From positions 62,001 to 126,000 of the IMG/VR virus record IMGVR_UViG_3300050821_002957: DNA of 64,000 bases; one strand, written 5' to 3'. Below the pieces are notes generated by a model. The model had not been told where the DNA came from. It was given only the letters and a program-made list of their open reading frames with translations, and ran no database searches. This document shows, piece by piece, positions 4,968 to 59,097 of this stretch. Position numbers and translations under genes: made by a program. Numbering within the stretch: position 1 is the stretch's first letter; each line of letters opens with the position of its first letter.

Positions 4968-5132
4968 ATGCAACCAACCATTCGTGAATCTCTTAAAAAC
5001 GCTTTGGAAGCCCTGAAATCCTCAGGCTTCCCTCCGGGCGGCGCAGTGTACGACGATCTGAACCAAGTTCTTCTCGATTTGGGCAACGAAGATATGTATG
5101 GGACGCTGCTTGAAGATCAGTTGACGGCATAA
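4968..5132 (+). CDS. hypothetical protein
   Basis: AAGGA Shine-Dalgarno; MQPTIRE... Confidence 0.6.
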   Translation: MQPTIRESLKNALEALKSSGFPPGGAVYDDLNQVLLDLGNEDMYGTLLEDQLTA

Positions 5133-5133
5133 A

Positions 5134-5183
5134 AGATACATCTACCCATTGACACCAAACAGAGAAATTGGTACACTTTACTC
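5134..5183 (+). promoter_or_regulatory. sigma70-type promoter with AGATACATCTA box; leaderless transcript
   Basis: AGATACATCTA(5134)...TTGACA(5149)-17-TACACT(5172)-6 nt-ATG(5184). Confidence 0.8.
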
Positions 5184-47906: not shown

Positions 47907-50495
47907 CTACTTCGATACTGCTTTGACTTTGCTGAGGTTCGCAATGTTGGAAACCATGCCTTCGAGAGGGGTTCCAGCGAACATCTGAGTGAGCGTACCG
48001 GAGAGGCTTTCGCCACGAACGATGGACAACGGAGCCAGATGCTCTGCAATCTTCTCGAACATGCCTTCTTGTGCCATTCCGACCAGAGCTTCGACCAGCG
48101 CCGGTTGCACAGACTTCATGCGTACATCGCTTGCCTTGGCTTCTTCGACCAAGAGACTGATCTTACGATCCAGTTCTTGTTGAGCGACCGCCTGCTTGTG
48201 TTCGTCAGCAGCTTTGGTCGTTTCCAGATACAACGCCTGTGTTATTTTGGCGATTTCGGCTGCATCTTGCTCGCCCTTCTTGCGGAGAACAGAAGCAGCA
48301 TTTTCAGCTTCGATTTGTGCCCGATTGTTAGTAGCAGAACGAGCAACAGCATCAGCAGCGATCTTATCTTTCATCTCTGCTGTGATTGAATATTCCGTTT
48401 CAATCTGGCGTTGAACATTCTCTTTGCCCTTGACGAGCGTGAGTTTGTTTTGAGTACGTTCAAGTTCGATGGCTTCCGAAAGAATGTCTTGGCGAGACTT
48501 GGAAAGCATGTTCGCCACTTCATTGTCTCTGACCGTAATCGTGATCAATTCCAAATCGTAGACAGTCATGCCGTTTTCGGAGAAGTGCTTGAGAGGCCGT
48601 TCGCTGGTGGTTGCCTTCGTGCCCAGGACAGTATCCCGCAGAATGTTCGCTGCGTTGCTGTAAAATTCCTGGACGCCGATGTTGCGAACAGCATTGCCAA
48701 TCAGAGAGCGAAGATGATCAACCATGTACTGGACATAATTGTCAACAGAGAACCACTTGTTCTTGTCGGCTTCGTCGAACCGCACAAGATACTTAACCTG
48801 GATATCGACATTCACCAAATCCTGAGTCTTCAGGCTGATAATGTCGGACACCGGATTCGAGATGTAACGCAGATACGCCGTAGGCATACGAGTGTCATTG
48901 TTCTTCGGCTTGCCCTTCGACAAAGACAGACGTTCCAGACCTTCGTCGTATTGCAGAAGAACAGTCTGTGGACCAACGACAGTGCGCCGGTCACCTTTGC
49001 TGTTTACGACTTGAACTGCAAAACCAGACCACGGTGAAATACGAACTGCACCGTCGTACTTGGTGTTGAGCGTAATGGTGCGTGGTGGCGTGTACTTCGT
49101 ACCACGATTCATCACATCGCCAGCGAGACCCTTACCAACAGCTTCACGAACCGGATCGGAATACGAAGCTGCCATGAACGACCGAGTAGACATACGTGTG
49201 TCTTCCAAGGCCGATTCCAGGCCACGATAACTAGCCGCCGCAGGAGCAGCGCCGCCAGCATTGCCGTAGAAATTACCAGGATTAGCGTCACGAAGTTCAC
49301 GATTGATGTCCAGAACTTCTGCATTGCCAGGATAGTACAGTTCACATTCGCTGTCGCTTAACGCACGACGAACTACAACTTCCTTACGAGGGTCGGGCAA
49401 GAACATTCTCGGCCCTTCGACAAGGTTTACTTCGCCGGTCTCACGATTCAGAACATAACGACCTTCACCGGCAGGAATTGCAACGGCGAATGACTTTGCG
49501 AAACCGCCGTACATAATCGTCGAATGCTCTTCACGAGGATAATAAATCGGTTGATCTTCGCCCGTAATGAAAAGTTCTTGACCAGCGGTGTACTTCGTTC
49601 CGCCTGTCACGGTGCCGTCTTCATTGGTCACGCCGCCTTCGACATAATCGGCAATGACTTTGATGTGCATACCAGTGGTCGGCTGCAATTCTTCCGCACG
49701 AAATTTGCGAGCGCCGTCTTTGGTATAGAATTGCTGAGTGGGAGTCGGGAAAACTACATCGGGACCGATCTTGTATTCCTTGTTCCCGCTTTCACCCAAC
49801 AAGATAGCGTATTCAAGGCGTTCGAGCGTCACAGCATCACGAATGTACTTGCTGTTTTCGTCGGTTAGAACTTCGACGCCGGTAGGAGGGATATAAAAGG
49901 CAACGGCAGTTCCCTTGATAACCAAGAGTTGCCCGGTTACCAGAGTGTCTTTGTTGATGCCCAAGACATTGGTGGTTTCGACGTTTGTAGTCGTATCGTC
50001 AGTGGTTGCGCCCTTGACGACAGACTTGTCCCAATTTGCTTTTGCAGCTTCGTCGTCATAGACCCTAACCATCAAATACTGATTACTGCGAAGATGGTGG
50101 CCTTTGATGACAGTTGCGACTTGACCCGGCCACAGTGCGAACGACTTCGGCCCAGGAAGGTTTTCAATTTGGCCCATCTTGAGCGAGCCAACGGTCATTG
50201 TTTCGGTCTTGCCTGCTTCTGGCTGCTTACCAGTGGATGCAGGGTTTTCCAGAACCACATAACTGCCCTTCGGGACCAGAATGTCGGTTTGGATTGCGGT
50301 TGCTTGGTCTCGTGCGGGAACGAATTTCTTTGAATCCGCATTGTACGTTACGAGTTGATCGGTGTTGCTGAGTGACGACTTGTACGGCCCACAGTACGTG
50401 TTAATGTTGCCCTTGGTATTGTCTTGGACATACGCAAACACGCCTGGAGGAAGCACTAACTCAGTATCACGACCTTGCTTATAGTCTTCTGCCAT
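47907..50495 (-). CDS. major vault protein (MVP) homologue, full length
   Basis: Vault repeats (LPPGVFAYVQDNTKG...GP; IPAGEGRYVLNRETGEV..V.GP; AVQV......RTVVGP..V.L...E....LSLS.GKPK); shoulder (D.I..KT.D...FSV.NYV......RS.I..AV......EF..N...I.R..V.G, F.ENGM.V); long cap helix. Confidence 0.85.
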   Translation of the reverse strand: MAEDYKQGRDTELVLPPGVFAYVQDNTKGNINTYCGPYKSSLSNTDQLVTYNADSKKFVPARDQATAIQTDILVPKGSYVVLENPASTGKQPEAGKTETMTVGSLKMGQIENLPGPKSFALWPGQVATVIKGHHLRSNQYLMVRVYDDEAAKANWDKSVVKGATTDDTTTNVETTNVLGINKDTLVTGQLLVIKGTAVAFYIPPTGVEVLTDENSKYIRDAVTLERLEYAILLGESGNKEYKIGPDVVFPTPTQQFYTKDGARKFRAEELQPTTGMHIKVIADYVEGGVTNEDGTVTGGTKYTAGQELFITGEDQPIYYPREEHSTIMYGGFAKSFAVAIPAGEGRYVLNRETGEVNLVEGPRMFLPDPRKEVVVRRALSDSECELYYPGNAEVLDINRELRDANPGNFYGNAGGAAPAAASYRGLESALEDTRMSTRSFMAASYSDPVREAVGKGLAGDVMNRGTKYTPPRTITLNTKYDGAVRISPWSGFAVQVVNSKGDRRTVVGPQTVLLQYDEGLERLSLSKGKPKNNDTRMPTAYLRYISNPVSDIISLKTQDLVNVDIQVKYLVRFDEADKNKWFSVDNYVQYMVDHLRSLIGNAVRNIGVQEFYSNAANILRDTVLGTKATTSERPLKHFSENGMTVYDLELITITVRDNEVANMLSKSRQDILSEAIELERTQNKLTLVKGKENVQRQIETEYSITAEMKDKIAADAVARSATNNRAQIEAENAASVLRKKGEQDAAEIAKITQALYLETTKAADEHKQAVAQQELDRKISLLVEEAKASDVRMKSVQPALVEALVGMAQEGMFEKIAEHLAPLSIVRGESLSGTLTQMFAGTPLEGMVSNIANLSKVKAVSK

Positions 50496-57815: not shown

Positions 57816-57850
57816 AAAAATGTGCGGGAGCAATGGCTCAACCGCTAATG

Positions 57851-57926
57851 TCAGGAAGGTGAGATTTGAACTCACGAATTTCTCCAATCCGAATGGAGTG
57901 GGGCAACCAGACTCCCCTTCTTCCTG
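57851..57926 (-). tRNA. tRNA-Pro(CGG) with A37, A8 and no encoded CCA
   Basis: CTCCA-TT-CGG-AT-TGGAG; C1-G72; A73. Confidence 0.82.
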
Positions 57927-57930
57927 AAAA

Positions 57931-58021
57931 TGGACCTGAGCATGGGCGGTGCTGTCCTAAGACCCACCATGATTCTCCAGCACCGTGTTTGCTGGCGGCA
58001 TTCCTTTATGCCTACATCAGG
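57931..58021 (-). ncRNA. tRNA-like RNA with expanded T-loop and CCA end
   Basis: Acceptor CCTGA(T)G/CTCAGG-T-CCA; D-arm GGCAT/ATGCC; arm CCAGCA/TGCTGG; T-stem CATGG/CCATG enclosing 21 nt. Confidence 0.7.
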
Positions 58022-58106
58022 ATTTAACTCGGAATGTTGGTAGACCGTTCGGGTAGAAATCTATCCCAACGACGGTCCCTTACTGATTTCATAACCAACA
58101 TAAAAA

Positions 58107-58198
58107 TGGCAGAGGGTAGAATAATCGAAATCCCATCCGGCTCATCACCGGAGCGACGGTTTTCAAGACCGTTGGCACACCAAGCGCCCGTACCCTCT
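58107..58198 (-). tRNA. tRNA-Ser(TGA), can fold as an 8/4 acceptor/T-stem tRNA
   Basis: ACGGT-CT-TGA-AA-ACCGT; AGAGGGTA/TACCCTCT; GGAT/ATTC; G73; CCA. Confidence 0.85.
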
Positions 58199-58205
58199 AA
58201 ACTCG

Positions 58206-58367
58206 TTAAATGTCGTATGCACAACTGCGTTCACAATCAGGACAACAATTACACATCGTCACAGAGTTGGGATGAATTTCTTCGTCAAATGGGCAGGGAT
58301 GTAACTCGACTGTACCCTCATGACCACACCCACTCGGATGCGTACAATAATAATTGTTATCAGTCAT
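58206..58367 (-). CDS. Cys-rich small protein (start approximate)
   Basis: AAGGAAG Shine-Dalgarno; HPCPFDEEI....CNCC.DC...CA.DI motif. Confidence 0.6.
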   Translation of the reverse strand: MTDNNYYCTHPSGCGHEGTVELHPCPFDEEIHPNSVTMCNCCPDCERSCAYDI

Positions 58368-58386
58368 ACAACTTCCTTTCAAACTT

Positions 58387-58463
58387 TGGTTGCCAGGATG
58401 GGACTCTCCCTTACGGGCCGACGATCTCAACGTTGTGCGTCTGCCAAATTCCGCCACCCGGCA
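58387..58463 (-). pseudogene. tRNA-Leu(GAG)-like gene lacking the 5' half of the T-arm
   Basis: Intact acceptor, D, anticodon and V arms and CCA; the V-arm is followed directly by AGAGTCCCAT with no GGTTC. Confidence 0.7.
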
Positions 58464-58469
58464 ATAAAC

Positions 58470-58848
58470 TTGTGGGAGCTTTTCACTCCACTCGACTATT
58501 CTGACACATCAGTACAGCTACCCTGCTTACGGTCGTTACTCTGAGCCGCCGTAAGAACAAATTTAAATGAGTACGAACAAATAATCGAATAGTCGGATTA
58601 ATACCGCTGCGTCTACCATTCCGCCAACACTCGAAAATTCTGCTTTCGCATGTCGAGTGCCCTGGACTTGAACCAGGACGCCCCAGAGGGACGGCGGTGC
58701 CTGATAACCAACTACCTACGGCTCGTACTCAAACTCATTGGCTTCGGGTAATGACGACATAAATGCAGTCTTCGCCTCTCTTCGATCCCATCAGAGTTAT
58801 CCTGATGAAATGCCTCACGCCGCTTATTAGACGGCCTACATCAAACTG
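58470..58848 (-). ncRNA. structured RNA containing a circularly permuted tRNA-Leu (core 58601-58704)
   Basis: 3' half (anticodon 3' strand, V-arm, T-arm, acceptor, A73) precedes the 5' half (acceptor, D-arm, anticodon 5' strand); the flanks base-pair. Confidence 0.8.
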
Positions 58849-58931: not shown

Positions 58932-59097
58932 AAAATGAAGGTTGCCCAGTCCACAATACAGGTCATACCTACAATCCCTCTAGCTTCGATAAGCGGAGCA
59001 CACTTCGCTCGACGCTTGATGTCAGCCTACTTCGATTCGCACGAAGAACCCCTGAATCCAAATCAGGAAGGATACTCTTTCCCCATAGACTGAAACT

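Follow-up and report, generated by a model that had tools for sequence, protein, structure and literature searches.

A 91-nt element on the minus strand of a soil phage genome (positions 57931-58021 of the window) was identified as a CCA-ended tRNA-like gene in which a hairpin takes the place of the T-loop. The window is the whole 64,000-nt stretch of DNA analysed here, corresponding to bases 62001-126000 of a 405,631-bp soil virus record that is rated complete. There is no doubt that the element departs from the canonical tRNA, and it is almost certain not to decode. Our preferred reading, to which we assign a probability of roughly 0.45, is that it is a lineage-specific, non-decoding tRNA derivative, co-transcribed with its neighbours and probably cut by RNase P, for which any function is hypothetical. 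To our knowledge, an elbow-less, CCA-encoding tRNA look-alike has not been described in a phage array, and a literature search returned nothing similar to the element.

The genome carries 44 tRNA genes, 39 of them with an encoded CCA, and a permuted tmRNA. No tRNA-Phe was called by ARAGORN in this otherwise near-complete set. The element shares the minus strand with 14 array tRNAs. Upstream of it, tRNA-Ser(UGA) (58107-58198, minus strand) is followed by a conserved hairpin and then by the element itself; on the other side, tRNA-Pro(CGG) (57850-57926, minus strand) begins 4 nt past the CCA of the element. Promoter-like and terminator-like sites were sought around the element and none was found, so that it should belong to the array transcript. 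An HNH endonuclease gene is located 170 nt downstream. Two accepted tRNAs of the phage, the second copy of tRNA-Pro(UGG) (window 59021-59092) and a tRNA-Val(GAC) (genome 251505-251580), have the T-loop UGCGAAU, with G replacing the universal U55. Many tRNA 3' flanks genome-wide consist of an A/U-rich stretch followed by ATG (for example, CCA followed by AAATTTATGA), which suggests that small reading frames may begin right at tRNA 3' ends.

The element is the reverse complement of the window interval and is read from 58021 to 57931; RNA position p corresponds to window coordinate 58022-p. The 5' strand of the acceptor, CCUGAUG (58015..58021), pairs through positions 1-5 with 83-87 and through G7 with C82, leaving U6 bulged. 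U8 and A9 follow. The D-arm (57997..58012) has a 5-bp stem, GGCAU/AUGCC (10-14 with 21-25), closing the loop AAAGGA, in which the GG is kept; position 14 in the sequence is U rather than A. The anticodon-like arm (57977..57995) comprises a 6-bp stem (27-32 with 40-45) and the 7-nt loop AACACGG, or alternatively a 5-bp stem and a 9-nt loop, and position 33 is A instead of U. After a 5-nt variable loop (AGAAU), the T-stem and its extension (57941..57971) are formed by five pairs, CAUGG/CCAUG (51-55 with 77-81), enclosing 21 nt in which UGG/CCG and GUC/GAC contribute six further base pairs around a UUAG loop. These 21 nt form a hairpin without the UUCRA motif, and the consensus of a 7-nt T-loop (T54-Psi55-C56 and A58, docking on G18-G19) is missing. 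The 3' end (57931..57940) supplies the acceptor strand CUCAGG, the discriminator U88 and the encoded CCA.

All 28 pairs were checked by script; each is Watson–Crick or G–U, and the sole irregularity is one bulge. The earlier note had described this anatomy from the sequence, and every pair that it named was confirmed, although it had left the strand unsaid. A four-stem cloverleaf with a 3' NCCA was found, the acceptor having six pairs plus the bulged U. U8, G18-G19, A21, the 5-nt variable loop and NCCA are retained as tRNA landmarks. The proposed structure has a calculated energy of -29.2 kcal/mol, and a cloverleaf with three arms is likewise the minimum-free-energy fold (-31.0 kcal/mol). The folding stability is ordinary (z = -1.14 relative to dinucleotide shuffles), but the shape is rare: a minimum-free-energy fold of cloverleaf type, defined as a terminal stem of 5 bp or more, a 3' tail of 4-6 nt and exactly three branches, was obtained for 11 of 3000 dinucleotide shuffles (0.4%), five of which were equally stable. 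Given this rarity, together with U8, the GG of the D-loop, the 5-nt variable loop, NCCA, the shared strand and the tRNA-like spacing, we take the element to be tRNA-derived and not accidental.

The element was uncalled by ARAGORN at default settings, at thresholds of 60-90% and with the intron option; the mitochondrial mode gave a call on the opposite strand only. The Rfam tRNA model RF00005, searched over 1.3 kb, did not match the element even at E ≤ 10. The absence of a T-loop, A33, U14, the 6-bp anticodon stem and the bulged acceptor account for this rejection. The canonical anticodon loop (7 nt, with U33, a purine at 37 and a 5-bp stem) is not present, and the T-loop, U33 and A14 are lost among the features used in decoding, in addition to the bulge in the acceptor. 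An unusual decoding tRNA, such as a tRNA-Val(CAC) or one with an expanded 9-nt loop whose aberrant T-arm is tolerated, is very improbable in view of these losses and of the rejection by both ARAGORN and Rfam. Such a tRNA would agree with the central position of CAC in the 7-nt loop, with the presence of C-first anticodons in most codon boxes of the genome, those for Val, Ala and Gly having none, and with the odd T-loop UGCGAAU of some accepted tRNAs. However, GUG is already read by two tRNA-Val(UAC) genes and a 118-kb related record lacks an orthologous tRNA-Val(CAC). As no tRNA-Val(CAC) is present in that record, a decayed copy of one was also rejected as the source. A loop complementary to AACACGG was sought elsewhere in the array and none was found.

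A parent was sought among the 44 tRNAs of the phage, and the best global alignments fell inside the range given by shuffles. With a covariance model built on the element (R2), the phage's own tRNAs scored 7-17 bits and no isotype was favoured (Asn, Gln and Ile at 12-17, Pro below 8). In an arm-wise comparison, the top ranks went to a single Pro tRNA and some Gly tRNAs from the relatives, at only about 2 SD. The Pro preference arises because Pro and Gly tRNAs are nearly the sole class-I tRNAs in those loci, and the phage's own Pro tRNAs score low. As no parent can be recognised, the element is not a recent copy of another tRNA gene. The earlier note reasoned that intact stems argue against random decay, and this retains some force, although the element is a single sequence and so offers no covariation.

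Pseudo-tRNAs and chimeras provide one standard of comparison, being likewise tRNA-derived, negative in tRNA finders and located in a scrambled array near homing endonuclease genes. A chimeric pseudo-tRNA is present in the same array, 370 nt upstream of the element (58387-58462, minus strand). Its 5' two-thirds resemble the tRNA-Leu(GAG) of relatives and its 3' end a tRNA-Leu(CAG), with 79% and 85% identity across the two portions; half of the T-arm is missing, the anticodon stem contains a mismatch and the sequence ends in ACCA. The chimera thus has recognisable parents and a truncated T-arm, whereas the element has no parent that can be recognised and its stems are intact. The label pseudo-tRNA fits the lost features of the element but not its intact stems. 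Nematode and arachnid mitochondrial tRNAs without a T-arm work without a canonical elbow; in these a short unpaired loop replaces the T-arm and dedicated EF-Tu variants are needed. In the element, by contrast, the helix is lengthened, and U33 is lacking as well.

Relatives were located using a major-vault-like protein encoded 7.4 kb from the element as an anchor. This 862-aa protein (47907-50495, minus strand) contains shoulder and repeat domains of the major vault protein type. Its homologues in metagenomes number in the thousands, and it shares 37-39% identity with proteins from uncultured huge phages (LR756500, LR756501 and LR756503; genomes of 462 kb and 735 kb). The tRNA array lies immediately upstream of the gene in all relatives. 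Among 5.8 billion clusters, the nearest homologue of the anchor reaches 75% identity, so that close relatives are missing from the available sampling. The arrays of eight relatives (L003, L005, L006, L007, L014, L015, L016 and L017) were searched, five of which (L005, L006, L014, L015 and L017) include the Pro/Leu part. Gene order within the array differs among all relatives, and its Pro genes are duplicated or moved.

No match to the element was found by blastn in any of the eight arrays or in two whole records of relatives. R2 was run with filters on and off and, over the same arrays and records, returned ordinary class-I tRNAs only (9-17 bits). Exact searches of IMG/VR with a 21-mer from the T-hairpin and a 19-mer from the anticodon arm retrieved nothing beyond a fragment of this phage, and blastn of the hairpin plus the element against GenBank phages gave no match. 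A search of 185,579 prokaryote genomes with an 18-mer taken from the D-arm gave six matches, which were dismissed as chance because they had no cloverleaf and one lay inside an open reading frame. The earlier note had named a lack of structurally conserved homologues as a result that would count against its proposal; the searches of the eight arrays, the two records, IMG/VR and GenBank phages found none, and with relatives as distant as these that outcome counts so provisionally. At the anchor, identity to the nearest relative sampled is only 75%, which makes absence from the relatives weak evidence.

The long hairpin between tRNA-Ser(UGA) and the element (58034-58101, minus strand) directly follows the tRNA and lies outside the element. 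It is 82% identical to L006 1734-1801 and is also present in L017 (2408-2474), and its outer stem shows compensatory changes among relatives. A short frame in the hairpin has the conserved start MKSV[KR]DRRWDR, the frame being lost past a 2-nt indel. A 19-mer from the hairpin matched, in JGI metagenomes, the same phage and otherwise chance sequences only. In both L006 and L017, a small HNH gene comes after the hairpin, and the element is missing. Against this background, the element could be a chance fold in a spacer or the leftover of an HNH cassette that stands behind the same hairpin in relatives. We consider this improbable: the occurrence of the cloverleaf in just 0.4% of shuffles, together with U8, GG, NCCA, the strand and the 4-nt spacing, speaks against it, while the z-score of only -1.14 and the small HNH gene at the element's place in L006 and L017 are in its favour. 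An alignment that includes the end of the hairpin also beats shuffles (p of about 0.02). Once the hairpin end is removed, however, 1162 and 1539 of 2000 shuffles do equally well, and a remnant of the HNH gene was rejected.

Under the preferred reading, a non-decoding tRNA derivative, the element would be transcribed with its neighbours as part of a polycistronic minus-strand array. The stack of acceptor and T-stem together with the CCA would allow RNase P and 3' trimming to release an RNA of about 91 nt. As a rod-like helix replaces the T-loop, the elbow between D-loop and T-loop should be unable to form, so that EF-Tu and the ribosome would accept the RNA poorly. It would most probably have arisen within this lineage as a by-product of array-shuffling recombination, being either a tRNA that came from an unsampled source and was then disabled or one that was remodelled in place. 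It may persist as a harmless processed spacer RNA and not as an essential part. A derivative or by-product is favoured because the element is absent from every relative, nearby conserved RNAs are retained there and the region is scrambled. Three other non-tRNA RNAs of these arrays, in contrast to the element, are conserved among relatives. Counter to a derivative, what stands in for the T-loop is an orderly 6-bp continuation of the helix capped by a tetraloop and not a random insert. Intact stems without a parent are also hard to reconcile with neutral decay or a young duplicate, as a relic should have broken stems and a duplicate a visible parent.

A soil metatranscriptome contains an exact 188-nt contig over 57896-58083, which extends from the hairpin across the element and on into tRNA-Pro. 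The contig is compatible with read-through RNA or carried-over DNA and gives no ends; both fit because a control stretch of the phage (30000-35900) is covered equally patchily in the metatranscriptome, at about 15% against 25%.

The first of the conserved RNAs is a permuted tRNA-Leu-like RNA located 550 nt upstream of the element (58568-58731, minus strand), with homologues at L015 5174-5327, L017 1837-1987 and L014 1933-2092. In these four sequences, from the phage and three relatives, 14 of 41 pairs covary. The first half consists of a strand of the outer helix, the 3' strand of the anticodon stem, the variable arm, the T-arm and the 3' strand of the acceptor; the second half comprises a linker, the 5' strand of the acceptor, the D-arm, the 5' strand of the anticodon stem and the other strand of the outer helix. 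This architecture is that of a YrlA-type Y RNA. RNAs of this type are Ro60/Rsr-bound tRNA mimics that are processed by tRNA enzymes and do not decode; they are circularly permuted, end at the anticodon side, where the two ends make up the stem bound by Ro60, have nearly invariant T and D arms and carry GNCGAAN0-1G in a 5' strand (Chen et al., 2014; PMC4201824). A GCCGUAG block in the permuted RNA is a near match to this motif, and no Rfam family matched the RNA.

Outside the window, the phage encodes a 621-aa Ro60/Rsr orthologue (minus strand, G000:C1:296382-298247 of the genome; locus L025, 829-2694) in which both TROVE (E = 3e-40) and Ro60 vWA (E = 2e-57) domains were identified. The gene adjoins tRNA-Ile. 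RtcB was not found. The encoded Ro60 is a likely partner of the YrlA-like RNA, though their genes are 176 kb apart. The element differs from YrlA in being unpermuted and in having lost the T-loop, and GNCGAAN0-1G is absent from its 91 nt.

A second conserved RNA, of about 108 nt, was found in five relatives (L006 1313-1420, L017 1995-2102, L005 3323-3431, L014 2100-2208 and L015 4494-4604). It has a 7-bp acceptor-like stem followed by A and CCA, lies immediately upstream of tRNA-Leu(GAG/AAG) and shows seven covarying pairs; it has no Rfam match. A covariance model built from the five sequences (R1) matched neither the element, with filters off, nor any other place in the phage genome, and homology of the element to this RNA is unsupported by R1. 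A hairpin GUCUUAGG(G)AC common to the element and the 108-nt RNA can be read from the sequences, without statistical support.

Several further sequences of these arrays were noted. L006 (1020-1190) and L005 (2325-2460) share a conserved tRNA-like stretch of about 160 nt between tRNA-Leu(CAG) and tRNA-Ser(UGA); its T-arm is canonical, and it contains large inserts. In L015 (5329-5416), just upstream of tRNA-Pro(CGG), there is a tRNA-Leu-like gene whose anticodon loop is 8 nt long (CUAAAGAA) and which is uncalled by ARAGORN. A cysteine-rich frame of 53 aa (window 58206-58367, minus strand) lies between the pseudo-tRNA and tRNA-Ser(UGA); no Pfam match was obtained when it was scanned within the longer frame 58206-58457, and a similar small cysteine-rich frame is present in L015 near 5060-5165. 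With the chimeric pseudo-tRNA on one side and the conserved RNAs on the other, the arrays yield both junk and functional-looking tRNA-like RNAs.

As the arrays carry functional-looking non-tRNA RNAs, there is precedent for function. The element might be a functional tRNA mimic, that is, a structurally maintained, CCA-ended, elbow-less RNA that undergoes tRNA-like processing and acts off the ribosome. It might serve as a decoy or sponge for host tRNA-cleaving defence nucleases or for CCA-adding and repair enzymes, as a ligand of the Ro60 particle of the phage itself or as an aminoacyl carrier. We hold such a mimic to be a tentative possibility, rated as it is because all stems are intact despite the lack of a recognisable parent. 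The retention of U8, G18-G19, A21, the 5-nt variable loop and NCCA is consistent with it, as is the presence in this phage of a Ro60 orthologue and, in the array, of a conserved YrlA-like tRNA mimic. The CCA-ended RNA that relatives have upstream of tRNA-Leu(GAG/AAG) is missing here, where the element lies upstream of the Pro-CGG and Leu-GAG genes, and the statistically unsupported GUCUUAGG(G)AC hairpin occurs in both RNAs. On the other hand, no homologue and hence no covariation was found, R1 does not match the element, the YrlA-type Ro60-binding motif and the permuted topology are both lacking, the folding energy is unremarkable and a specific expression signal is absent from the soil metatranscriptome. 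A more specific form, in which a maintained, lineage-specific elbow-less mimic is cut by RNase P, acts as an off-ribosome decoy or sponge and may replace the 108-nt RNA of relatives, is unlikely.

The T4 species 1 and 2 RNAs, of which the earlier note was reminded, are alike in position within a tRNA cluster, but covariance models gave no sign of homology. The genes rnaC and rnaD of T4 specify small stable non-decoding RNAs inside the phage tRNA cluster, adjoining tRNA genes; tRNA-Arg stands immediately upstream of them, and the cluster also includes a homing endonuclease gene. R2, run unfiltered on the T4 tRNA region, returned T4 tRNAs only and nothing at rnaC or rnaD, and R1 did not match either gene. 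The RNA from rnaC keeps a canonical T-arm, with long hairpins replacing the rest, which is the opposite of the element. In addition, rnaC and rnaD as annotated have no terminal CCA, whereas the element is CCA-ended.

Annotation of tRNA clusters in huge phages usually relies on tRNA finders alone, and the window holds several tRNA-shaped genes that the finders miss. As things stand, the element is an oddity of a single lineage, and the YrlA-like RNA in a Ro60-encoding phage and the covarying 108-nt CCA-ended RNA of the relatives are the firmer leads. If functional, the element would represent a new design of tRNA mimic in which the acceptor, D-arm and anticodon arm are kept and the elbow is removed, and it would be relevant to how phages handle tRNA-targeting host defences and RNA quality control.
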